Origin: Rebecca billardiae RCC1528
Taxonomy: Eukaryota > Protista > Haptophyta
DNA length: 64,000 bases
Reading direction: 5' to 3'
Assembly (NCBI GenBank): GCA_965240325.2
Contig: OZ251242.1
Span: forward strand, 1,302,001-1,366,000
Shown: positions 1 to 44,755 of the stretch, piece after piece
Layout of the letters: every line of letters starts with the position of its first letter
How positions within the stretch are numbered: the stretch's first letter is position 1
Made by a program: the position numbers and the translations under genes
The notes under the pieces: generated by a model
The model's database searches: none
Told to the model about the DNA's origin: nothing
Seen by the model: the letters and a program-made list of their open reading frames with translations, nothing else

Positions 1-1570
1 GGTCAAGCGTCTGCAGGGAGCGGCTGTGGCGCACGGCGTCCGCGATGGCAGTGGCGCCAGCGGCGCCGATCTCGTTGGCACTGCGGGAGGCGCGGCGGGA
101 GGGGCGGGCGCGCGGCTGGGGTGTGAGTGGGTGTCGAGCGCGCGCGCGCGATGCGTGCCCGCCCGAGCATGCGCGAGCGCGCCGCACGCGCCGCTGCCAC
201 AGCGCTCCACGGCCGCGCCGCCCGCCCGCCGCCGCGTGCGCGCCCGAGCCCGCCGACGGGCCGCGCGCGCGGCGCACGCTCGGACATCACCGCGCGAGGG
301 CGCGCGGCGCGCGCGCGCGCGGCGCGCCGCGCTCGACGTGCGTCCGCAGCGCATGCCCCGGCTGGCGCCCACCCACCCACCCCCGCCCCTCCGCGCCACC
401 CCCGCCCCCGCACCCGCGCGCGTGCACACGTACTGGAGGTTGAGCTCCTGCAGGGAGCGGCTGTGGCGCACGGCGTCCGCGATGGCAGTGGCGCCAGCGG
501 CGCCGATCTCGTTGCCACTGCGGGAGGCGCGGCGGGAGGGGCGGGCGCGCGGCGCGGGCGTGAGTGGGTGCCGAGCGCGCGCGCGCGCAGCGTGCCCGCC
601 CGAGCACGCGCGAGCGCGCCGCACGCGCCACTGCCACAGCGCCCCGCGGCCGCGCCGCCCGCCCGCCGCCGCGCGCGCGCCCGAGCCCGCCGACGGGCCG
701 CGCGCGCGGCGCACGCTCGGACATCACCGCGCGAGGGCGCGCGGCGCGCGCGCGCGCGGCGCGCCGCGCTCGACGTGCGTCCGCAGGGCATGCCCCAGCT
801 GGCACCCGCTCACCCACCCCCGCCCCTCCGCGCCACCCGCGCGCCCGCCCCCGCGCGCGTGCACACGTACCCGAGGTTGAGCTTCTGCAGGGAGCGGCTG
901 TGGCGCACTGCTTCCGCGATGGCGGTGGCGCCAGCGTCGCCGATCTTGTTCCAACTGTGGAAGGCGCGGCGGGAGGGGCGGGCGCGCGGCGGGGGCGTGA
1001 GTGGGTGTCGAGCGCGCGCGCGCGATGCGTGCCCGCCCGTGCACGCGCGAGCGCGCCGCACGCGCCGCTGCCACAGCGCCCCGCGGCCGCGCCGCCCGCC
1101 CGCCGCCGCGCGCGCGCCCGAGCCCGCCGACGCGGCCGCGCGCGCGGCGCACGCTCGGACATCACCGCGCGAGGGCGCGCGGCGCGCGCGCGCGCGGCGC
1201 GCCGCGCTCGACGTGCGTCCGCAGCGCATGCCCCGGCTGGCGCCCACCCACCCACCCCCGCCCCTCCGCGCCACCCCCGCCCCCGCACCCGCGCGCGTGC
1301 ACACGTACTGGAGGTTGAGCTCCTGCAGGGAGCGGCTGTGGCGCACGGCGTCCGCGATGGCAGTGGCGCCAGCGTCGCCGATCTCGTTGCCACTGCGGGA
1401 GGCGCGGCGGGAGGGGCGGGCGCGCGGCGCGGGCGTGAGTGGGTGCCGAGCGCGCGCGCGCGCAGCGTGCCCGCCCGAGCACGCGCGAGCGCGCCGCACG
1501 CGCCGCTGCCACAGCGCCCCGCGGCCGCGCCGCCCGCCCGCCGCAGCGCGCGCGCCCGAGCCCGCCGCAG
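1..1570. repeat. Tandem exon+intron repeat, unit ~437-438 bp, at least 3.5 copies
   Basis: Exon starts at 1392, 954, 517 and 80 (spacings 438, 437, 437); intron sequences near-identical between copies. Confidence 0.95.
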
Positions 1571-3085
1571 CAGCCGCAGCGGCGTCGCCACGCGCGCGCG
1601 CGCACACCCGAGGTCGAAGACCACCGGGTCTGGGTTGGCCTTGAGCTGCAGCAGGCGCACGACGACGGCCTTGTGCGCTACCCACGCGCAGCCCCACGCC
1701 CACGCGAGTGCCGCCAGCGCAGGCGCGCTCTGCGCCTCGCGCCACGCGGACGGCCAGCGCAGCGCGGCCACCGCCAGCGCGGCCTCCGCGCAGCCGAGCA
1801 GGATGTGGGTGGGCGCCGTGCGCGCGAGCCACCCCGCCGAGCTCAGGTCGACCATGCCGACGGCGGCGTACACGATGCCCGCCTCCCACGCCGCGCTCCG
1901 CCAGGCCGCCAGCTGCCCTCCGCGCTCGAGTGCACCCATGACCTTGAGGTGGCCGCTGTAGCGCACGGAGGCGACCAGCGCGAGCGCCGCCGCAGCGAGC
2001 GCCGCCACCAGCCAGCTGCGGAACGCGCAGGCGAAGAGGCCGTGCGTCAGCGCGCGGCACAGCACGGACGCCACTGTACCCACGCGGCACGCCAGGTCGT
2101 CCAAACCCACCGTCCAGCCGACCACGGGCACGGTCACGCTCCACCAGTGCCCAACACTTGCCACGCTGCTGATGGTGTACACGTACGTGTGGTGGCCAAT
2201 CATCGAGGCAGAGAAGAGCAGCGAGGCGAGCGCCAGCGGCGTGGCGTGCGCGGCGCCGATGCGCAGCATCGCGTACCCCTGCAGGTACGTCTGCGGCGCG
2301 CTCTCCACCGTCGCCTCGAGCGCCTTTGCGTTGCGCAGCTTCCCTTCCGCCTCTCTGCGCATCCCCTCGGAAGCATCGGGGTGCAGCACGGCCACCTCTG
2401 CCGCGGCGCGCGCGACTTGGAGCGTGGGCAGCGCGCCCGCGGCGGTGAAGACGAAGGCGAGGCCCGCCCACAGCCGGTGCGCGCACCGCCACCACTGCGA
2501 CGCGAGCAGCGCGTCTGTGAACAGGTCGAACGCGGACATGGCCGCCGAGAAGAGGCTCTTCGCCGTGGACGCGGCCGCATCCCGGCTCTGCCACGCGCGC
2601 AGCAGCAGCAGCGCGGCGACTGCGAGGATGCCGGACGCGCCCGCCACGAAGGTCCAGCGCCCGGCGCGCTCGCCCGCCGAGCCCGGCGCCATGAGCCACT
2701 GCCAGTCCTGCCGCCCCACGCGCGCGAGGCAGCGCGCATCCTCGGGCACGTCCGCCGTCCCTCGCTGCTCCAGCAGGCTGAGCGAGCCCTTGATGTGGTG
2801 CCGCCAGTGGTACGCTGCGCTGGTGAGGAGGACAGTGCCGCACGCGGCGCCGACGACGAGCAGCCACCGCCCCGCGCCCCAACCCGCGAGCCGCTCGCGC
2901 ACCCCCCGCCGCGCGCCGTCGTCGCCGCCCGCGGCCGCGTCGCTCGGCTCGGCGCCATCTTGGACGAGCGTGGCGCGGACATCGGGCGGTGCCTCGGGCG
3001 CGCCGTCGTCGCCACGCTCCTCCTCGTCACTGGAGCGCACGCCGGCTTGCGTGCCGCAGGGGTTCTTGCCGCAGAAGAGCCACAT
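1..3085 (-). CDS. XK-related (scramblase-family) multi-pass membrane domain fused to C-terminal RNI-like LRR array; exons 3085-1608, 1392-1309, 954-871, 517-434, 80-<1 (continues beyond left edge)
   Basis: First ATG at 3085 (MWLFCGKN...). XK motifs: SAFDLFTDALLASQWW...WAGLAFVF, KALEATVESAPQTYLQGY, LALASLLFSAS. GT donor at 1607, then 84-nt exons bounded by CAG|...|GT encoding 28-aa LRRs (xNEIGDAGATAIADAVRHSRSLQELNLx), all phase 2. Confidence 0.85.
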
Positions 3086-3499
3086 GCTCGGGCGTAAGGG
3101 GGAGCGCGCGTGATAGATGGCGGCGGCGTCTGGCAAATGATGAGCCTGCGATCGGCCACGAGCTCGTTCGAGGCTCGAGCGCGTTCATTGATATGACTTT
3201 GTGAGAAGCCTTGGGCGTCTGGGACGCAACAATGACATCATATTATCATGGCGCCCAAATCGGATGCCAGTTTTCATAAGCAGGTGCGATTCCCCAGTGA
3301 GTATTATTCCGCGGGGGGGGCACGCCCGGATTTAACCGTGCCGCCCCCGCGGCTTTGTGCAACATCAAGGAGAGTCCGGACGCTTCCAGTCCGCCTCCAA
3401 GTGCGGGGACCCCTCGCGACGGCCGCGCCGCCGCACCCGAGCGTGCCGACCCGCGCCTCGTGATAACACGCGCATTTGGCGGGGCGCGGGCGGAGCGCG

Positions 3500-4095
3500 C
3501 CGCGCGCGGGCGCGTCGGCCCGTACGCTCGGAGCCCCGGGGGAGTCCACTCCGAGCGCGCCGCGCCGCGCCCGTCGCGCCGCGCCACGGCGTGCGCCGTG
3601 CACGCGTTCAGTGCGGCTCGGGTGCCGCGCGCCGCCACGGAGCGGAAAGAGAGCCGGGAGCGGGTGCGCTGGCGCGGGCGGGGTGTGGAGGCACGCTACG
3701 GGAGTCTACCTCTCGTGCCGCGCGCGCGCGCCCGCTCGGCGCCGTCGCTTGGCGCGGCCGTAGGCGTCCAAGCGTCGATGGTTGGCCTCGCTGTCGAGGA
3801 CCGCGCTAAGGGGGCCGCCTGGGGGCCGTAACGCTTGACGAGACCGAGCACGCTGCTGACGAGACCGAATACGCACCGGCACCGGCCCATGGAAGCCCGC
3901 CGCGCGCTGTGGCCGCGCGCCGCGCGCACATCAGGCGGGGCGCGCGCGGAGTCCGCCGCGCGTGGGGGCCTCAGCCAGTACGCTCAGGCCCCCGGGGGAA
4001 GCACATGCGACCTCGCCGCGCCGCGCCCGTCGCGCCGCGCCACGGCGTGAGCAGTGCGTCCCGGTTCGACCAGGGTCGCGGCGCGCGCCGCTGCG
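3500..4095. repeat. Diverged direct repeat (~140 bp x2; ~3500-3640 and ~3955-4095)
   Basis: Shared core cgccgcgccgcgcccgtcgcgccgcgccacggcgtg preceded by gtacgctc...gccccgggggga-like sequence in both copies. Confidence 0.55.
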
Positions 4096-6730: not shown

Positions 6731-7427
6731 AGCGCGCGTCGCGTGTTATTATCGTCAAGCCGCGGCGCAGCAGCAACGACTATACTGCTGCTCATGCCTG
6801 CTCGCTCGAACCGACTCCCAGGTCACCGCGGAGCCCGTGACGATTGGGATTTTATTAATAATGGGCCTTAGCCCCTCTTCTGCAGCTGCGAGCCGCTTGG
6901 CCGGCGCGCGGCGACGCGTACTACGACCTCATCCTCATCCAGGCGCCCACGCGGGCGCACGGGGGCGACAGCCGCGGCTGCCGCTTGCCGGAGCTGCTCG
7001 CCGCTAGGTCGGCGGGCGGCGACATCGACTACGACCTCACCCTCATCCAAGTGCTCCGGAAGGCGCTCGGCCGCGGCGGCATCTGCCGTCGCCGCCGCGT
7101 GCCCCAGGCCGAGGCGGTGCTCCATCCCGGCCCCGCTCCCGTAGGGGGGCAGGGCTGCGGGTGGCGCACTGTCTGACCTGGACGGAAGGCGCGGACGCAT
7201 TCTATGTGTCTGTTGCATTCTGAGCCTGACGCTTGTCCGATGCTGCCACGTCGTTAAATATATATATATATATTGTAAGACGCGATCGACCGTATAGTTA
7301 TTACGACGCGCGTGCGCCGCGCGGGACTTAGTAGCTACGAACTACACTCGGCACGGGTACGACGGGTACCAGGGCAGCCGCGGCCGTGCCGCGCCTGAGA
7401 CACGTGTATTTGCCACCCCCCCTGGGG

Positions 7428-26513: not shown

Positions 26514-28820
26514 TCACCTCGGCGGTGAACTCGCCACACCGGCCGGCCTCAGCGGGCTCCCCCTGAGCGGCGCGGCGCCGGGCGTCGCTGTGAGCGATTC
26601 GCGTCCGCGCACCGAGCCGTGCCGGCTGCCGTGCCGGCTGCCATGTCGGCTGCCTTGCCGGCTGGCCGCGCGCGAGGACGCGCTCGAGGCGGGGCGGCTC
26701 CCCGCCGCGGCGGCCGCCGCGAGCGCGCTTGCGAGCTCAGTCGCGGGCGGGCGGTGCGCCGAGGGCGCGCGCTGCAGGATGCAGCTCGCCAGGTCGGACA
26801 TGCTGCCGCCGCCGCCGCTCGCAGACAGCCGCGCGGCGCTCCGCGTCGGCGAGAGCGGCGGCGGCGCTTCGGTCGGCGGCGGCGGGCCGGGCTCGCCGGC
26901 GCCGGCGCCCGGACCCCCACCAGCCTCTCCCGCGCGCACACCCCCGCCGCCCTGCGCCGCGCCGCCCTCGTCCGCCGCCGTCGGCTCGGCGCACACCGCC
27001 CGCACCACCGCCTCGACCCTCGGCAGCAGCTGCGCCGCGAGCGCCGACGGCTCGAGCACGAGCTGGCGGGTGCGCGGGTCGACGAGCGAGCCCGCCTCGC
27101 CCCTCGGGTCGGCCAGCCGCACCAGCGCCTCTGGAAACTCCTCGAGGGTGAGCTCGACGTCGGCGGCGTGCGCGCGCGCAGCGTTGGGCACGCCGAGCTC
27201 GGCGCCGAGCTCGGCCTCTGATTGGCTCAGCGCGAACGCCGCCTGCACCGTCGCCGCGCCCACCGGCGGGCGCAGCAGCCCGTGCGCATCGAGCAGCGCC
27301 ACCCACTGCTTGAAGCCGAGCACGCGAGGCGCGCGGCCGCTCAGCGTGGGCGCGTGCGCGGCCGAGCGCGCCGGCACGGAGAATTGGTTCCACGCGCGGC
27401 GCAGCCCGCGTGCGTGCAGGTCAAAGAGTGAGCGCACGGCCTTCTCGCGCGAGACCGCGCGCAGCAGCTTCGGGTCGTCGCGCTTGGCGGAGGGCAGCAC
27501 GTGCGCGTTCAGGGTGCGCTCGAGCGCGGCCGAGGGCGAGAGGCGGAGGGCGGCGCAGCGGCGCACTGCGATGGCGAGGAGGAGGGAGGCAAACTCGGCG
27601 AGGTTGAGCCCGGCCTCCGCGCCGGCCGAGTGCGCCGGCTGCCCCTGCCCCGAGCGCCACGACGCGGGCTGCCCGCCGCCGCCGTCGTGCGGCGCCGGCG
27701 GCTGCTGCGGCTGCTGCGGCTGCTGCTGCGTCTGCTGCGTCTGCTGCGTCTGCTGCTGCGGCTGCGTCTGCTGCGTCTGCTGCGTCTGCTGCGTCTGCTG
27801 CGTCTGCTGCGGCTGCTGCTGCGCGAGCGCCGCGCCATACAGTCGGCCCAGCTCGTCCGGCGTGAAGGCGCGGTTGTGCAGCCGGCAGTCGGCGGCGAGG
27901 CGGCGCAGCTCGGGCAGCTCGAGCAGGAAGAGGTCGTCCCCCGAGCCCGCCAGCCCCTCCGCGCCCTCGCCCCACGCCTCGGCGCCACCGCCCGAGCGCG
28001 CGTAGAACGCGTGGATCAAACGCAGCGCGCCAAAGCGCGGCGCCAACACGTCTCGGATCAGCCGCGCCTCTGCGCGCGCGTCGGGGGCGGCGCGCACGGC
28101 CTCGTGGTTGCCGAGGCCACGGCAGAACGCGTCGAGCGACGCGTCCTCCTCCGCCGCGCCGCCGCCCCGCTGCGCCGCGTCGCGCTCGATCGTCCACGCG
28201 CGCCGCGGGCCGATGCGCGTCTGCGCCATCGCCGAGCGGAGCCCGCGCTCGAGGCGGCGGCTGCCCGGGTCGTGCACGAGGCCGCCGATGAAGGCCTCGC
28301 CCGCGGCGGTGTACAGGCGCGAGTCGAGGGCGAGCTCGCCGCGCCGCACCGCCTCGCGCGTCACGCCCGCGCGCGGCTGCAGCCGCGCGACGGGCGGCGC
28401 GGTGCGCGGGCGCGCGCGCGGCTGCGCCATCCCCACCACCTTGGTGCGCCCCTCGCGCATCGCGAGGCCCGAGGCGGTGCAGCCGACGGGCGTCCACGCG
28501 GCGATCAGCTCGGCGGAGACGCGCTCGCGTACGCCGTCAGACGGCTGCAGCACGTCCAGCGACGCGCGCAGCGCGGCGTGGTACTGCGCGCCGCTCGGCG
28601 CGCAGCCGCCCGCCGCCGCCGCCGCCAGCCGCTCGCGCGCCGCCGCCGCGGCGCGCGCGCGCGGGTGGTCGGCGGGCAGCGACGCGACGGGCGGCGCGGT
28701 GGCGGGCGGCAACGGCCGCGGCGCCGCCGCCACCGGCGCGAGCATCCGGACGCGGTGCTCGCCGCCCGGCCCCGACGCCGGCCGCTCGGCGCAACAGCTC
28801 GACGGCCTGCTCGCCGCCAT
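26514..28820 (-). CDS. Hypothetical protein with polyQ/QQT tract and EF-hand-like helices
   Basis: Long ORF with coding-like codon usage; LELPELRRLAADCRL, LNLAEFASLL, LTLEEFPEALVRLA; (CAGCAGACG)n at ~27700-27820; SRHG repeats near the C-terminus. Confidence 0.6.
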   Translation of the reverse strand: MAASRPSSCCAERPASGPGGEHRVRMLAPVAAAPRPLPPATAPPVASLPADHPRARAAAAARERLAAAAAGGCAPSGAQYHAALRASLDVLQPSDGVRERVSAELIAAWTPVGCTASGLAMREGRTKVVGMAQPRARPRTAPPVARLQPRAGVTREAVRRGELALDSRLYTAAGEAFIGGLVHDPGSRRLERGLRSAMAQTRIGPRRAWTIERDAAQRGGGAAEEDASLDAFCRGLGNHEAVRAAPDARAEARLIRDVLAPRFGALRLIHAFYARSGGGAEAWGEGAEGLAGSGDDLFLLELPELRRLAADCRLHNRAFTPDELGRLYGAALAQQQPQQTQQTQQTQQTQQTQPQQQTQQTQQTQQQPQQPQQPPAPHDGGGGQPASWRSGQGQPAHSAGAEAGLNLAEFASLLLAIAVRRCAALRLSPSAALERTLNAHVLPSAKRDDPKLLRAVSREKAVRSLFDLHARGLRRAWNQFSVPARSAAHAPTLSGRAPRVLGFKQWVALLDAHGLLRPPVGAATVQAAFALSQSEAELGAELGVPNAARAHAADVELTLEEFPEALVRLADPRGEAGSLVDPRTRQLVLEPSALAAQLLPRVEAVVRAVCAEPTAADEGGAAQGGGGVRAGEAGGGPGAGAGEPGPPPPTEAPPPLSPTRSAARLSASGGGGSMSDLASCILQRAPSAHRPPATELASALAAAAAAGSRPASSASSRAASRQGSRHGSRHGSRHGSVRGRESLTATPGAAPLRGSPLRPAGVASSPPR

Positions 28821-29167
28821 GAGCGCGCGATGAGAATGTCGTTTCAAAAAGACGGGCGTCCGGCGCGCTCGGCCCGCGGCTGTACAGTTTACTATGATTT
28901 AGCGCAGTCGAACTGAAATGAGCACACTCCGCCTACAGTTTACTATGTTTTAACGTGCACGCTACAGTAACTCAATAAGCCGGGCCCTTGCCTCACTGAG
29001 CAGCTCAACAATAATGTCAATGAGCAGCCGCCGTAGCTACAGAGGCCACTACTCGAGCGACTTCGTGTCAGGCGAGGCAGCTAACTGCTAAGCCAGTAAA
29101 GCCGCGTCACACACTCGCCCAGCCCGTTGCCCGGCTCCACGGGGCAGCTAGGCTTGTTATGACACTT

Positions 29168-30658
29168 TCATTTGCACGGGCCGATGCCCGATGCACCCTC
29201 CACGACGATAGGGTGGATATCGCGAGAGGCGCACGACACTCGGTGGTGAAATGGAAAGTGCCCTGCTCCGCCGGCTCCGGACTCCCAGTGCGCCGACTTG
29301 AGCGCGTAGAGCTCCTTGCACCGACCCGGGCGGTCGAACTCGATGCTGAGCACGGACCGTGCGCGCGTGCCGTTCAGATTCGGCCCGTGGATCGCGTTCG
29401 TGTCGAAGAGGTACAGCGAGCCGAGCCGGCCGTGCATCGAGACGACCTGGTGCTGCGTGCGCACCCACCTCTCGTCGAAGCGCGAGTCGAACTGCACGCC
29501 GTCGTCGACCGAGTAGTACACCGCGCGGTGCGTGCCGTTGGTGACGAGCGTTGGGCGGCCGTGCGTCTCGTCCACGTCGTGCAGCAGGAGGAAGAGCTTG
29601 AGCCGCCGCCCCACGCGGTCGTGGTGCCACAGGTCGTTTTCGTAAGGCCACACCTGTTCGCGGAATCGGCGGATCGTCGCGCCGTATGTGCACACCGCCG
29701 GCGGCGGGGCTGGGCCGGGCGCGCCCGAGCTCGTGTGGCGACGCGCTGCGGCCGCACGTGCCGGGTGCATGTACGCCCCCACCGCGCGCGCGAGAGCCTC
29801 GTCCCGCACGAGAGGGCGCAGGAGGGCGGCCAGCTCCTCGTCCCACGCGCCGATCACGTGGCCGCTTCGATACGCGTTTTTGTTGTGGCTCTGCAGCCAG
29901 CTCTCTCGCACGTCGAGCGCGTCCATCGCCACACGCGCGATCCGCTCCGCGTCGAGGCCGGGCCAGGACTCGAAGCGCACGAAGCCGTCGCGCGAGAGCC
30001 GCGCGTACATCTCCGCGGCGCGCCGCCCGACACCATCGGCGTCGCTGCCGAGCGCGTCCGCCAGCAGCGCCGCCGGCGCGTGCCGCTGCGGCACGTCCAG
30101 CTCCCAGAAGGCGCGCGCGAGGCGCAGGTTGCGCTCCTCCGCACGGGCGAGATGCAAGCTGCGTTCGGACGGATGCGTGGCCCGTGGCAGCCCGGCCATC
30201 GACGGCATCGCGCCGGTGTGCAGCTGCACCACCTTCACGAATGCCTGCTGCAGCGCCTGCTGCAGCGCGGAGCTGGACGTCCTCGGGTCTGCATCTCGCG
30301 TGAGCGCGGGCGTCAGCATGGCGGTCGGATCGTAGCTGACGGCGCCCAGCGAGAGTCCCGCGACGATCGCCACGCGCAGCTGCTGCGCAGACGTTGCTGA
30401 TCCCCGCAGCCGCTCGCAGAAGCCCTTCCGACGATGCTTGTACACGTCGTGCATGATCACGGCGGACGGCTGCCGCTTGAGGACCCTGGGCTTGGTGGAC
30501 TTGAGACGGGCGGTGCCGTTGGCGACTTCTATGACCGGCAACGCGTGGATCGTCTCGAAAGCGCGCGCGTTGGCTGGCGTAAACGGCATGGGAACGCCTC
30601 GCAGGCTCGTTTGAGCAGGAGCGCACGCGTCGACCGCGTTAGTGACGGGTGGGGCCAT
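29168..30658 (-). CDS. Phytanoyl-CoA dioxygenase (PhyH)-like 2OG-Fe(II) oxygenase
   Basis: WHHD (HxD)...LKLFLLLHDVD...GSLYLFDTNAIHG...RSVLSIEF gives the HxD...H...R motif. Confidence 0.8.
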   Translation of the reverse strand: MAPPVTNAVDACAPAQTSLRGVPMPFTPANARAFETIHALPVIEVANGTARLKSTKPRVLKRQPSAVIMHDVYKHRRKGFCERLRGSATSAQQLRVAIVAGLSLGAVSYDPTAMLTPALTRDADPRTSSSALQQALQQAFVKVVQLHTGAMPSMAGLPRATHPSERSLHLARAEERNLRLARAFWELDVPQRHAPAALLADALGSDADGVGRRAAEMYARLSRDGFVRFESWPGLDAERIARVAMDALDVRESWLQSHNKNAYRSGHVIGAWDEELAALLRPLVRDEALARAVGAYMHPARAAAARRHTSSGAPGPAPPPAVCTYGATIRRFREQVWPYENDLWHHDRVGRRLKLFLLLHDVDETHGRPTLVTNGTHRAVYYSVDDGVQFDSRFDERWVRTQHQVVSMHGRLGSLYLFDTNAIHGPNLNGTRARSVLSIEFDRPGRCKELYALKSAHWESGAGGAGHFPFHHRVSCASRDIHPIVVEGASGIGPCK

Positions 30659-30931
30659 GCTGGCCGGCAAGAGGGGATCGATCGATCACCTCGCAGAGCG
30701 CTTTCTCAAATAAGGGACCACCCCGACCGGACTCCCTCGGTTGGCTGCACCATTTGGCTGCACTGGCGTCTGGCGAGCGGCGCCGGCGGCCGTATCGATG
30801 GCGCTCACGCCCTTCGCGCGCATCAGACGAAGAGTTCAAGCCGCGAGTCTTTTGTGGGCTAGCTCCATGCCGTTGAGGAGCACGAGCACCATCAAGTTTG
30901 TCTCACTTGGGGGCTGGGGGGGCCGGGGAAT

Positions 30932-38524: not shown

Positions 38525-40370
38525 TCAGGCGCTGAGCCGTGAGCGGCTTGACTGCGCGAGCGGCGCGAGCGCATGCGTGCCACGCGCGCGCCACTTCCAT
38601 CTATCGCGCTTCCGCCGGCTTCCGTCGGCTGAGTGATCACTACGATGTGTCCGCGAGGTCATCGCCTGGCGGCGCCAGCCTGCGGGCAGGCGTGGCGAGC
38701 TGCCCTGCGGTCGCGAGCCCTCGGGCATGCCGACTGAGGACGTGTTGGCGGCACCGTGACAGACCGTAGGCCTGCCCCCCTTGACGGCGCGAGGGTTCCC
38801 AGCCGATGCTGTCGCCGAGTGCTCCGGTGCTTCCTCTATTCTCTTGCTCAGTTGCCCGGTGCGCGCGCAGCTGGGCGGCGTGGTAATCTGACTCTCAACT
38901 AGCCGTGGCCTGCTGGCGGACAGACCGGCAGACCCGTGCGAAGTGACTCCGGCTGTCTGCGGCCTGAGCGTTCCCAGCCGCCCGACGGCGTCTGAGCTTG
39001 TGGGACGCTTGGCCGCCGGATGGAGGCAGCCCAGGGGACTGACAAGTCCATCCTGCATTCCGCTCGGGTCTCTCACTCAGCCAATTGTCAGGCCGGAGGC
39101 CGCGCCACCACGCGTGTGAGTTGTGGACAGTGCGGACCACACGCCCCAAAGCCCTCGTCCCTTAGGAGTCGATGCCTTCCGGGAGCTCGGTTGAATACAG
39201 TTGCGCGTGCGTGAGCGCCTCCCGGACAGCCGCCGCACACGTAGGCCGCCCGCCTCTGTCGTCCGCAGTGGCGCGTGCGCGTCGAGGCGCATGGCGGCTT
39301 TTGTTGCGCCGGTCGGGCCCGTGCTCGCGGCGCATGCACGCCCCACGACCAAGACGCTCGTCTTGGGTGCCTTCCATTCGCTCGCACCGCGACTATGTCG
39401 TCGACAGCCTTGTGATCACGCACATCGCCATTTCAAGCTGCCCGCGAGGATGCCGTGGCGGCAAGTGCAGCTGACGGCAAGGTGGCGATGTTGAGTACTC
39501 TCACGCCCATCGCAGAGAAGCAAAAACCCGACATTGAATGCCCCAGGGGCGCACGCGCGCCCATCACGCTCGTCGGACAGGCCTGCTCGAGAACTGCGCG
39601 TGCCATTCAGCAGCGCTCTGGCGCAGAGAGGGTGGCCGCCACGGTTGCTCGGGTGAGTAATTCGACAGCAGAATCATCCAGTCATCGATCTTGATGAATC
39701 GCAGCCGATCTTGCCACCGGATGGATGGATGATACCGAAGCATGCGGTATGATGATTATTATGATTGGGACATTGGGTATGAAAATAGCCGCCTGAGAAT
39801 CCGAAGTGATCGGTGCCATTGACGAAATTAGGACGCTCATCCTGTGAGCCAGTGCGCGTTAAAACGCATATTGAACAAACGGTATTTCAGGGCGGTGTTC
39901 GTCAACATTTGTATCTTGCGAAGCTGCGCAGGCGCACCACTCGGGTATTCGAGAAGGGAATCGGTGTTTGGCACACTTGTCGACCGAACCCGAAATATAC
40001 AGCCTTCGTCAAATGCCGAAGTCTCTTCGAAGATCGTTTCGTGCCGTTGCGTCGCAAACGACGAACGTCGAACCACACTTCCATATCAGGGCCCAAACGC
40101 CAATATGAACAAACTGCTCACTAATCTTGCCTTTGCGCGCCTACCCATCGGCGCCAACAGCTAGTGCACGAACCCACCCCTCCCGAGCGAGATCGCCCGA
40201 GTGACCGCTGCGTGCCCCACAGAGCGCGCAGATTGGTCCTCGGACCACCCCAGCCGCGCCACCCAGCGCTGGCCACTTGTGCGGCCGCCCCTGGCTCCCG
40301 GCGCGCGCCGCCCGCTTCAAACGCTCGCACGGGCGCGGGGCGGGGCGGTGCCGCGCGGCGGACGGGCGCG

Positions 40371-43358
40371 ATGCCCGGCCGCGCAGATCGAAGACGCATA
40401 GGCGCCGACGGCGGCAGCCCAGGCCCGGCGCACGCCGCGCCTGCGGACAGCGCCGGCTCGAGCCCCGAGGGGCCGCCTCGGCGCCCCGGCAGCCGCGTGA
40501 GCTTCGGCGCGGGCTCGGCCGAGTGCGCCTCGACCGAGTCGGTGCGCCGGCTCACGCCCAACTCGTCCCAGGCGTCGAGCAGGCACACCACGCCCTCCGT
40601 CCCCGCGCGCCAGGGCCGCGCGTCCGGCAGCAAGCGCATGTCGCTGGCACACCTCTCGCCCTCGGCCGGCTCGCGCTTCGACCGCGGCGGCGGCGGCGTC
40701 GCGCCGGAGGAGCGGCGGTCGGAGATCATGGCGCAGCTCGAGCACGCGCGCGCCGACGGGCGCACGATGCAGCTCCGCGTGCAGCTCCCCGCCGTCGTCC
40801 TCGGCACGTCGGTCGCGTTGCTGCCGATCGCGCTGATTGCGCTCGGCGGCCGCGCGGCCGCGCCCGCGTTCGCGCTGGGCGGCGCGATGCCCTTCTCGCT
40901 CGGGCTGGCGCTGCTGCTGGTGGCGGTGATGCCGACCGACCGGCGCGTCACGCAGGCCCTCGGCGGCCTGCTCGCCGCCGTCCTCGCCGCCGGCGCCGCG
41001 CTCGCCGCGCACCGAGCGCACCTGCTGCGCGTGGCGCTGCTGCGCGCGCTGGACAATGCTGTCGTCGGGCCGAGCGGCGGCGGCGCGGGCGGCGCGGCGC
41101 GCGCGGAGGCGGGCGGCGCGGAGTGGGCGCGGTGCGAGATGGCGCTGCTCGGCGTGCCCGCGCCGTGCGCCTTCGGCTGCGCCGCGCTCGGCCAGACCGC
41201 CGCGCTCGCCGCGTCCGCGGCGTTGCTCGTGCTGCTCATCGTACTGCGGCTGGCGCGCGGCGAGCAGGAGCGTCCGTTCCTCGTGGCGCTGTGGCGGGAC
41301 GTGGGGCGCTGGCTGGCGTGCGCGGGCGTGCTGCACCTCGGCGTGCTCGCCGTCGCGCTCGGCGCGCACTACGCGCGCGCCTCGCCGCCCGACGACGCGG
41401 CGGCCGCGGCGGCGTCGCTCGGCGCGCTCGGCGCTTCGGGCCTGTGGCTGCTGCTTCTCGGCGGCACGGTCTCGCGGCCTGGGGTGCGGGAGCGGCTGCA
41501 CTCGTGGCTCTCGGCGCACGGCCCCGAGGTGTCCGCCGCGGCGGGCGTCGCCGCGCTCATCGGCTCGCGCGACGAGAAGCTGATCCTCGCGCAGTCCGTT
41601 CAGCGCTTCCGCGCGATCTCTCTCGAGCACCTCGAGTTTCGGCACCTCGAGTCGAACGCGCCCGACCCGTCGCTGCACGCGCTCTCGACGCCGGCGGAGC
41701 TCGGCGCGGTGGACGTGCGCGCGCGCGCGACGCGGCGCGCGCAGCCGCCGCCCCGCGCGCGCGCGCGCCACGCCGCCGCCGCCGCCGCCGCCGTGCTCAC
41801 CAGTCAGTCCTCTGGCTGCTGCCCCGCCCGCGCTCTGCACTGTGCCCTGCGCCCCTTGCGCAGGCGTTCATCTCGCACTCGTGGTCGGACGACGTGAACG
41901 ACAAGTGGGCGGTGCTGCAGCGCTGGCGCGAGCGCTTCAGGGACAAGCACGGCAGAGAGGCGCGCGTGTGGGTGCGTACTCGCGCCAGAGCGCAGCGCAG
42001 CGGCCAAGAGGCCGAGAGCGCAGCGGCGGCCGGTGGCGGCCGCGTGCGCTGACGTGCCCCCCCCCCTCCCCCTTCCGCCCCGCCCCGCCCCGCCCCGCCC
42101 CGCTCCTGCGGTGCCACTGCGCGCAGCTCGACCGCGCGTGCATCGACCAGTCAGCCATCGAGGACAACCTGCTCTGCCTCCCCGTCTTCCTCGCCGGCTG
42201 CTCGCGCGTGCTCGCGATCGCCGGCGAGTCCTACTCATCGCGGCTGTGGTGCGTGATCGAGCTGTTCTGCTTCATCGCGATGGGCGGCAGCGCCGAGGCG
42301 ATCGAGCTGCTGCAGCTGCGCGGGTTTGGCGCGGTCGAGGGCTTCGACGTGCGCGGCGCGCGCTGCCACAAGCCCGAGGACGCGGAGCGGCTGCTGCTGA
42401 TCGTCGAGAGCACTCACGGCGGTCTGGACGGCTTCAACGCTCAGGTGAGCAGCGCACCCGCACCAACAAGCGCACCAACCAGTGCGCCCTTGGTGGCCGC
42501 GCGCGCACTGGCTGTGCTGTGCGGTGCGCTGTGCGCTGTGCCGGCCGGGCGCTGTGCGCGCGCTGCGGCTGTGCTGGGCAGGCGGCACGGCTGTGGCTGT
42601 GGCTGTGGCCGTGGCCGTGTCTGTGCCGGGGACGGCCTCGCATCGCCTCGCATCGCCGCGCGCCGCCGCGCCGCCGCGCCCTGCGATCGCTCGCGCGCGC
42701 GCGCAATTGCTCGCTCACGCGCGCCGCCCTCGCGCGCGCGCGGCGCGGCGCGCGCCCACCCCGCAGGTGCGCGCGGTGCTCGACCAGGCGGCGCACGCGT
42801 CGATGCTGCGCGAGCTGCAGGAGGAGCGGCTGCGCACGCCGCCCATGTCGCCGATGCGCGCGCTCCGCACCTCGTGGGCGGGCCGGAGCTCGGCCGGGCG
42901 CTCGTCAGTCGGCGGCGGCGGCGGCTTCCGCAGTTCCCAGCGCTGGTCGAGTGACGAGCATGGCGGCCTGGGGGGGCGCGCGGCGCAGCACCGGCTGGGG
43001 TCGGACTCGAGCCCGGCGAGCGTCGGGCGGCACAGCAGCCCGGGCACCACCGCGCTGCACTCGGGCGCGGCGGCGGCCGCGGCGGCGCGCACCGGCGCTC
43101 GCTCCGAGTCGGACGCGGCGGCGAGCGCGCAGTGGCGCACGTCGACTCTGTCGAGCGCCGCGTCCGACCTGGCCGATGAGGAGGCGGACGACGACGAGCC
43201 GCTGTTCGGCGCGCTGGGGATCGAGATGGGCGGGCTCGAGCCGCTGCCCCCCTTCGACGTCTCAGAGGTCGCAGAGGAGCCCGGCGCCGCCGGCGGCGCG
43301 CGCGGCGGCGGCGCCGGCGGCGGGAGCGCAGACGCGCGGCCGCTGGCCGATGAGCCGA

Positions 43359-43389
<31 letters not shown>

Positions 43390-43571
43390 GCGGCAGCCGC
43401 CGCCGGCCGCGTCATCCGGCGCGGGCACCAAGTCGCCCACGCCGCTCGCGCTGCTCGAGATGCCGAGCAGCGAGTCGCTCGGCGACAGCGCCGAGCCCGA
43501 CCTCGAGGCCGCCCAGCCAGCGCCCTCGCTCCGCACCGCCGCCGCGCACAGCGCCGCCGCCTCGTTCGCGC

Positions 43572-43602
<31 letters not shown>

Positions 43603-44755
43603 GCGGCCGGCGCGCGCGGCCGAGGGCGCGGGCGGCGGCGCGGCCCCGTTCGGAGGCCGGGCGGGGGCGCGCGGCGCGGCGGTCGCGGCGACGTGGCGGG
43701 CGGGCGCGCGCGCGATCACGCGCGCGCTAGAGGTGACCGTTGCGCTGCGCGCCCACGCCGCGACACGTGCGAGCGCGGCCAGCGACGACGACGGCGGCGG
43801 CGACGACGACGGCGGCGAGGCCGGCGGCGGCGGGGCGTGCGCGGCCGGCGAGATGTCGCCCTGGCGGCGTGCGAGCATCACGCCGGGCGCGCGCGCCGAG
43901 TTCGCGCCGCCGCAGCCGCCGCCGCCGCCGCCGCCGGCGGAGCAGCACCGCACGCGCCGCGTGGGCGCGGAATCGCCGCCGCCCGCCAGCTCGCCTGTGT
44001 GCTCGCCCGAGACACAGACGCGCCAGCCGCTGCTGCGCGCGCGCGCGGCGACGTCCGCGCTCAGCCGCGCGCCCGGCGCCGCGCGCGCGGCCGGCGCGGG
44101 CGCGGGCGCGGGCGCGTCGCCGCCCGGCGCGGGCCGCGCGCCCGCCGCCGCCGCCGCCGCCGCCGCTGGCGGTGGCGCTGAGTCTGCCGGCAGCGCCATC
44201 CCGCGCATCGGCCGCTCCCGTTCGACCACGCAGAGCTTTGCGAGGCCCGGACTGGTGCGGCGCTCGCCCACGGCCGGCGTGGTGGGCTGCGACGGCGGCG
44301 GCGGCTGCGGGAGCCCGAAGCCCGCCGCCGCGCCCGCGCCCTCGCCCGCGCCGCTCTCCGCCGAGCTCGCGCGGCTCGCCGAGCACGCGCAGATCTACGC
44401 GCGGCCGGAGCGGCAGCGGCACAGCAGCGGACGGCAGAGCGGCGCGCGTGTCAGCCAGACGCTCAGCAGCACGCTCTCGCTCGCGCGCACCGAGGGCTCG
44501 CCGCCGCCCACGCTGGCGCGCTCGCGCTCGAGCGGCGACGAAGGGCGCCGGAGCTCGGGCGGCAAGGCCGAGCGCGAGGCCGGCCAGTCCGGGCACGGCG
44601 GCGGCGGGGCGAGCGTCACGCCGCTGCACACGCCGGCCGCCGCGTCGCCGTTGCGCACGCCGAGCGCCGCGCCCGAGGCGCTCGGCGCCGCTCTGCCAGC
44701 GGCGCACCGGCCGGCGCCGGTGCAGCAGGTGGCGGCTACTGCCCACGTGGCCTGA
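40371..44755 (+). CDS. Multi-pass membrane protein (~6 TM) + TIR-like domain + long disordered C-terminus; exons 40371-41714, 41864-41971, 42127-42444, 42767-44755
   Basis: Spliced TIR motifs DAFISHSWSD, VWLDRACIDQ, LPVFLAGCSRVLAIAGESYSSRLWCVIELF; three phase-0 GT-AG introns keep the frame. Confidence 0.85.

Follow-up and report, generated by a model that had tools for sequence, protein, structure and literature searches.

A 64,000-nucleotide stretch of DNA from the haptophyte Rebecca billardiae RCC1528 (assembly GCA_965240325.2, contig OZ251242.1, forward-strand positions 1,302,001 to 1,366,000), referred to here as the window and numbered from its first letter, opens with a predicted minus-strand gene that joins a membrane domain of the XK family to leucine-rich repeats (LRRs) of the ribonuclease-inhibitor (RI) type. 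This XK–LRR fusion gene is quite probably real. To our knowledge, XK-family scramblases are known almost only from animals. A short C-terminal tail keeps the animal proteins off until a caspase or kinase acts. If the algal protein is made and active, it would show that scramblases of this family can be controlled in a second way, through a ligand, and it would offer a candidate link between recognition and a membrane or death signal in a unicellular alga. An earlier note on this DNA had described the pairing of an XK domain with in-frame RI-type LRRs as unfamiliar, and the sequence supports the existence of this architecture; full-text literature searches turned up no account of a protein that pairs an XK domain with LRRs, a result that is no proof of absence.

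The predicted gene occupies the first 3.1 kb of the window, where G+C content is 70–84%. Exon 1 (1608..3085, minus strand, 1,478 nt) begins with the ATG at 3085 and contains 492 codons plus two nucleotides; the encoded protein has an acidic N-terminus and an XK-like core preceded by two extra hydrophobic helices. Intron 1 (1393..1607, minus strand, 215 nt, GT..AG, 88% GC) has a predicted donor GT at 1607 and acceptor AG at 1393, and its removal would join exon 1, which ends at 1608, in frame to position 1392. Specifically, the predicted joins 1608->1392, 1309->954, 871->517 and 434->80 yield an open frame and a stop-free product that reads ...VVFDLG|GNEIGDAGATAIADAVRHSRSLQELNLH|WNKIGDAG... across the junctions. 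Every intron is in phase 2, and the two spare bases at the end of exon 1 recur at the end of each downstream cassette exon. The C-terminal PVVFDLG of exon 1 forms the beta-strand part (LxxLxL) of the first repeat, which the next exon continues with GNEIG to give PVVFDLGGNEIG... as the repeat begun in exon 1. Intron 1 splits this first LRR at the same point as later introns split theirs, and of the arguments that the sequence itself offers for placing exon 1 and the cassettes in a single gene, we regard this shared split point as the strongest. The earlier note had proposed this in-frame splice from 1608 to 1392 into at least four LRRs; the GT..AG borders, the frame and the repeats all agree with it, and the splicing itself is a prediction made from sequence.

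The distribution of G+C over codon positions provides a separate line of evidence. For exon 1, the G+C fractions at positions 1/2/3 are.73/.58/.92, and for the 84-nt exons they are.63-.74/.48-.52/.89-.93, whereas values are flat across codon positions at.80-.92 in the introns and in the frame that reads through them. Because this signal is limited to the predicted exons, it marks exactly those exons as coding. The read-through product, a 949-residue stop-free open reading frame (ORF), was rejected as a candidate protein, given that its second half (~440 residues) is Arg/Ala-rich and carries no codon-position GC signal.

An alternative is that the gene model is wrong, such that the XK-like coding sequence and the LRR exons remain separate and the array is either part of another transcript or an untranscribed or decaying exon–intron satellite beside an XK-only gene. 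This would suit the closest clear relatives of the exon 1 protein (called P0001 and P0002), which are XK-only proteins, and stop-free frames are cheap at such GC content. However, exon 1 has no stop near its end, where read-through gives only ~440 residues of Arg/Ala junk. Moreover, the strand of the first LRR is encoded at the end of exon 1, the donor phase is the same as in the cassette exons, the distance from exon 1 to the first LRR exon is just 215 nt, and each 84-nt exon retains the GC periodicity of coding sequence. We consider this alternative improbable. It is likely that a real protein-coding gene of a very GC-rich eukaryote begins here, with at most its 5′ two-thirds inside the window.

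Exon 1 and the LRR exons were searched separately rather than as one spliced protein. The 492-residue, multi-pass membrane protein encoded by exon 1 matches the Pfam XK-related family PF09815 at 25.3 bits (E 9.1e-6; gathering cut-off 24.8). When the two halves of exon 1 were scanned apart, PF09815 was the sole family found, with co-linear matches of 16.8 and 16.4 bits that place residues 177–219 on profile positions 3–45 and residues 256–374 on positions 129–239. A HMMER pass over 1.84 billion representatives recovered only four relatives of the exon 1 protein. P0001 aligns with it continuously over residues 115–482 (E 5.6e-22) and P0002 aligns with E 4.8e-17; these two proteins are themselves clear members of PF09815, at 51.8 and 48.5 bits, respectively. 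Thus, the membrane domain is homologous to the XK family, and the marginal Pfam match that the earlier note had asked for is backed by these relatives. Language-model look-alikes of the protein are likewise all XK-related clusters (score 0.89, 195 shared features).

A search of PDB sequences with exon 1 alone gave no match, whereas a three-sequence profile matched only XKR9 (7P14; E 0.024), at the E..PQ..LQ.Y motif. Word-indexed protein searches with exon 1, alignment A1 or P0001 returned nothing beyond P0001 itself, and no relative was recovered from scanned metagenome contigs or viral contigs. Sampling of this family is very thin. As judged by its profile matches and its relatives, the membrane domain is a divergent member of the XK/Xkr family.

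Residues that matter for lipid scrambling in animals recur in the algal protein at the expected distances. Mutations of Xkr8 at D26, D30, K134, E137, E141 and R183 markedly reduce scrambling, and W45 serves as the gate (PMC8500837). In the exon 1 protein, D187-x3-D191-x14-W206 (2468..2527, minus strand) has the Xkr8 spacing of D26/D30 and gate W45 and is invariant in alignment A2, and K254-x2-E257-x3-E261-SAPQ (2291..2326, minus strand) has the spacing of K/R134, E137 and E141 and includes the family motif E..PQ..LQ.Y. These correspondences to Xkr8 were drawn by motif and spacing, not by residue-level alignment. The XK-like exon with multiple transmembrane (TM) helices and with D..TD and ESAPQ..LQ.Y motifs that had been described earlier is therefore borne out, in that FDLFTD (D187/D191) and K254-ALE257-ATVE261-SAPQ-TYLQGY are both present.

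The XK-like core (1637..2572, minus strand, residues ~172–483) has eight predicted membrane helices, placed by the PF09815 matches and the helices of an AlphaFold 2 (AF2) model. Two further helices are predicted before the core at residues 73–97 and 141–166, from hydropathy and model helices. The first of these, called TM0 (2795..2869, minus strand), is recognized by hydropathy and preceded by five Arg residues; it is present in a related contig (L002) and absent from P0001 and P0002, which have the second extra helix only. The window protein shares with P0001 and P0002 not only this one pre-core helix but also the motif C-L-x3-G-x2-D-W-x-W-L-x-A-P-x3-G-E (residues 119–140; 2665-2731, minus strand), which lies before the helix preceding the core. 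This motif, abbreviated below as CL..G..DW.WL.AP, is invariant in the three proteins, lies outside the Pfam model and may mark this protist clade of XK-like proteins.

If the canonical XK orientation is assumed, with both core ends in the cytosol, the N-terminus (with its five Arg before the first helix) and the C-terminus are predicted to be cytosolic, and the CL..G..DW.WL.AP loop would lie outside. The LRRs begin ~10 residues past the last core helix. The C-terminus of XKR9 is an intracellular, pocket-bound inhibitor (PMC8298096), and the XKR8 tail acts as a plug (PMC10938166). The LRRs of the window protein are predicted to sit in the cytosol, at the position of this inhibitory tail of Xkr8/9.

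The LRRs are encoded by a tandem array (11..1567, no strand assigned) made of 3.6 copies of a 437-bp unit, with 94% matches and no indels. Each unit corresponds to one 84-nt exon and a 353–354-nt intron of 85–88% G+C; intron 1 shares the array over positions 1567..1393, its first 40 nt lying outside. The cassette exons, each 84 nt, have C-rich ..CAG acceptors and GTACGT donors. Three of them are complete, on the minus strand and in phase 2-2: 1309..1392 (GNEIGDAGATAIADAVRHSRSLQELNL; Pfam LRR_6 19.3 bits), 871..954 (WNKIGDAGATAIAEAVRHSRSLQKLNL; 21.2 bits) and 434..517 (GNEIGAAGATAIADAVRHSRSLQELNL; 15.6 bits). A fourth (1..80, minus strand) is cut by the window edge, and the gene goes on beyond position 1. 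Counting the repeat begun in exon 1, the window contains four full 28-residue repeats in register and the start of a fifth, with the consensus LxxLxLxxNxIGxxGaxxIaxAv.

The LRR_6 scores of individual exons (15.6–21.2 bits) are each below the whole-protein cut-off of 23.4. When the single 27-residue exon at 1309..1392 was compared with the PDB, it matched the LRRs of NOD2 best (5IRL, E 3e-7), then ribonuclease inhibitor (1DFJ, 2e-5), as well as RanGAP1, NLRP, NLRX1, axonemal radial spoke protein 15, DRC5 and LRRC34. All of these are cytosolic RI-like LRR proteins. By their common register and these matches, the repeats are RI-like LRRs, a class of 28–29-residue repeats with the pattern LxxLxLxxNxIGxxGaxxLaxaL; LRR_6, the profile named in the earlier note, scores below its cut-off on each exon.

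Sequence differences among the repeats are unevenly placed. Across the three complete units, variation affects 10 of the 84 exon sites and 23 of the 354 intron sites (p 0.11), and eight of the ten exon differences are non-synonymous by codon reading, nearly all of them at binding-face positions. Within all the repeats in the window, six of the seven variable residues fall on x positions of LxxLxLxxNxIGxxG (hypergeometric p 5e-4, for a set of positions chosen with the data in view). As its copies read, the 437-bp unit is recently homogenized. The pattern hints at homogenized introns combined with diversified binding-face codons, in an array of very few repeats, too few to test selection.

Relatives in other sequence data differ in whether they carry LRRs and in how intact they are. 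P0001 (442 aa) is encoded on Logan contigs L005/L006 (ERR14847148/50) beside a glutaredoxin-like gene, and P0002 (424 aa) is encoded on a 1.9-kb JGI contig (3300016936). Both are 30–36% identical to the window protein over the whole core, and both differ from it in lacking TM0 and LRRs, their chains ending right after the last helix. A 28-nt exact match was also noted between window positions 7236–7263 and L005:4670-4697, at the end of the P0001 contig, which may reflect a shared short repeat or closely related organisms.

Another relative, P0004, is 64% identical over 72 residues and is found on contigs L002–L004 (Logan ERR14847148/49/52), to which tblastn aligned residues 62–137. The sequence at L002:2869-3672 (also in L003 and L004) is 73–79% identical to exon 1; in-frame stops interrupt it, and 548 nt are deleted internally (window 2590..2042 missing). 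On the contig, it is not followed by an LRR exon. The copy on L002–L004 looks like a decayed paralogue or orthologue, present in the organism sequenced in those runs.

We propose that the gene product has two extra N-terminal helices, an eight-helix XK-like core and a C-terminal solenoid of 28-residue RI-type LRRs. With both termini in the cytosol, the LRRs would take the place of the autoinhibitory tail that is removed or released by caspase cleavage or phosphorylation in Xkr8/Xkr9. The core would still scramble phospholipids by way of the D187/D191/K254/E257/E261 path, gated by W206, and a cytosolic ligand or partner at the variable concave face of the LRRs would control its activity, as the LRR domains of LRRC8 control the pore. 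An LRR-regulated scramblase is a reasonable proposal because the spacing of the Xkr8 path residues is kept and the LRRs are at the position of the Xkr8/9 regulatory tail. Provided that the fusion gene is real, we regard this function as a serious possibility, at somewhat less than even odds. In broader terms, the LRR solenoid is most likely a cytosolic binding module that either regulates an XK-type scramblase or brings partners to it.

The same fusion gene might instead encode a membrane anchor or adaptor, in which the LRRs would have a housekeeping function, docking a cytosolic protein of, for instance, the cytoskeleton, the flagellum or membrane contact sites. One such case is human XK, a partner of the lipid-transfer protein VPS13A. 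Consistent with an adaptor, axonemal proteins (radial spoke protein 15, DRC5 and LRRC34) are among the PDB matches of the LRR exon besides NLRs, the in-window part of the gene showed no nucleoside triphosphatase (NTPase), death or TIR domain of the kind used in immune signalling, and none of the neighbouring ORFs examined looked defence-like. In addition, XKR9 itself shows no scrambling in liposomes (PMC8298096). In contrast, the conserved spacing of Xkr8 scrambling residues, the concentration of variation on the LRR binding face and the decayed paralogue are more in keeping with a diversifying family than with a housekeeping adaptor. An adaptor role is the main competing reading and is rather unlikely on balance.

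A part in pathogen sensing or cell death, again given a real fusion gene, is unlikely, the variation of the binding face and the decayed paralogue being hints in its favour. In its most specific form, this proposal holds that the proteins are diversifying intracellular sensor-effectors, in which recognition of a molecule from a virus or another pathogen by the variable LRR face would open an XK-type scramblase directly; we give it a slim chance. If it were true, a single protein would provide a route from recognition to lost membrane asymmetry or cell death that requires neither an NLR-type NTPase nor a caspase. The earlier note had offered both an LRR-gated scramblase and a pathogen sensor, and the architecture on which it relied is upheld. 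A TLR-like surface sensor is unlikely because the repeats belong to the intracellular RI/NLR class and their predicted location is the cytosol. A surface LRR ectodomain was set aside as unlikely on the basis of the RI-type repeats, the lack of a signal peptide and the predicted placement of the C-terminus inside the cell.

Several observations weigh against an intact and active XK–LRR fusion. The PF09815 score is just 0.5 bit above threshold. At 80–88% GC, long stop-free frames are no evidence of coding, and the window stops short of the 3′ end of the gene, with the LRR array running past position 1. About 47 profile positions have no counterpart between TM2 and TM3 (IH1 of XKR9), a shortening that might disable the fold. 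XKR9 is described as a duplicated unit of four membrane helices, and each unit has one further helix that is half-inserted in the inner leaflet (PMC8298096); on that plan, the shortened stretch falls between TM2 and TM3, at the site of IH1. An equivalent of Xkr8 R183 was not identified, as predicted TM4 (residues 283–311) has no Arg or Lys, in a region where the alignment is unreliable.

Structure prediction adds to these points. AlphaFold runs on three to six sequences gave poor models, with predicted local distance difference test (pLDDT) values of 56 and 47. With the first of these models, Foldseek matched XKR8/9/4 with E values of 0.15–0.94 (XKR9 probability 0.75, TM score 0.32–0.36), and VIA Z values were 6.8 for XKR8 (171 residues aligned), 6.8 for XKR9 and 6.4 for XKR4. 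These matches are not above those to unrelated helical proteins, and XKR8, XKR9 and XKR4 have the highest sequence identities in the structural match list. An Atlas shape search with that model gave no meaningful matches. The comparison with an Xkr8 structure that had been suggested earlier thus gave XKR matches at background level, and we do not claim the fold.

The sole hint of an XK–LRR fusion outside the window comes from a 1.2-kb transcript-like JGI contig (L001, from 3300016802). The relative encoded there (P0003, L001:1-1171) has an ESAPQ..IQLY motif and the C-terminal half of an XK-like domain, after which come the LRR-like stretches VTSINLFGKGITPVGVEALAGAL and then LSRLDLSRNGLSD. The fusion on this contig spans three reading-frame pieces, so frameshifts are needed to connect them, and its LRR_6 match is weak, with an E value of 0.23. 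Assembly errors, a pseudogene transcript or a chimera could each account for it.

The gene in the window could also be a recently dead pseudogene copy of an XK–LRR family member, intact in appearance and unexpressed. Family decay is seen in the stops and 548-nt deletion of L002–L004, and the window copy lacks the ~47 positions of the XK model described above. Yet no stop interrupts exon 1 or any of the four LRR exons, the splice sites are preserved, G+C at third codon positions (GC3) is 0.92, and the differences among LRR exons are patterned rather than random. We consider a dead copy very improbable.

The XK–LRR protein, as predicted, resembles several known systems in part. With Xkr8, Xkr9, Xkr4 and CED-8, it shares a homologous membrane domain, as established by profile and transitive homology, and the same spacing of path residues and gate Trp; as in Xkr8/9, a regulatory element, here predicted to be the LRRs, would be located on the cytosolic C-terminus. 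It differs from these animal proteins in its two extra N-terminal helices, its shortened TM2–TM3 region and its non-animal host. Furthermore, an LRR solenoid replaces the short caspase-cleavable or phosphorylated tail of Xkr4/8/9/CED-8, and no caspase-site tail of that type is present in the window part of the protein, the chain entering the first LRR ~10 residues after the last helix.

In LRRC8 proteins, cytoplasmic LRR domains modulate a transmembrane pore and control it through their conformation (PMC8440666). LRRC8/VRAC matches the window protein in layout, with a membrane conduit followed by a cytosolic C-terminal LRR domain (PMC8440666), and is an analogue in this respect only. The LRRC8 pore is an unrelated, pannexin-like four-helix fold in a hexameric or heptameric anion channel with a different LRR class, whereas the membrane domain described here matches PF09815 only and shows no pannexin-like pore. 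The LRRs of NLRs (NOD2, NLRP and NLRX1) and of ribonuclease inhibitor are of the same RI-like repeat class. Unlike NLR/STAND proteins, exon 1 encodes no NACHT/NB-ARC NTPase, a comparison that covers a gene whose 3′ end lies beyond the window.

The exon organization has a counterpart in brown algae. The LRR-ROCO genes of Ectocarpus encode one 24-residue LRR per 72-nt exon and exhibit exon shuffling, recent copies and binding-face variation (PMC3341825). The window gene has the same layout of a fixed-length, symmetric-phase exon for each LRR, with recent copies and binding-face variation. In Ectocarpus, however, 72-nt exons accompany a ROC-COR GTPase, whereas here 84-nt exons encoding RI-type repeats accompany an XK-like membrane domain, and no ROC-COR domain was found in the window gene. 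The gene would extend the one-repeat-per-exon cassette layout of brown algal LRR genes with a new kind of head domain.

The remainder of the 64-kb window contains no second XK or LRR copy that we could find, and Rfam gave no matches. The ten longest ORFs between 9.8 and 30.7 kb have only two Pfam matches, both sub-threshold and neither defence-like: TFIIA (21.9 bits) in a long minus-strand ORF at 26514-28847, and PhyH (17.7 bits) in another at 29168-30670, also on the minus strand. They are the sole domain hints over the 27 kb beside the gene. At 40164-44755, the six longest ORFs have no Pfam match at E 0.01 or better, and a TIR domain is not confirmed there at the ORF level. Upstream of the XK–LRR gene, plus-strand ORFs at 3355-4050 encode the similar peptides ...RAERAARGRVGPYARSPGG...APRPSRRATA and ...RAESAARGGLSQYAQAPGG...APRPSRRATA, which suggests that a segment a few hundred bases long is directly repeated 5′ of the gene.

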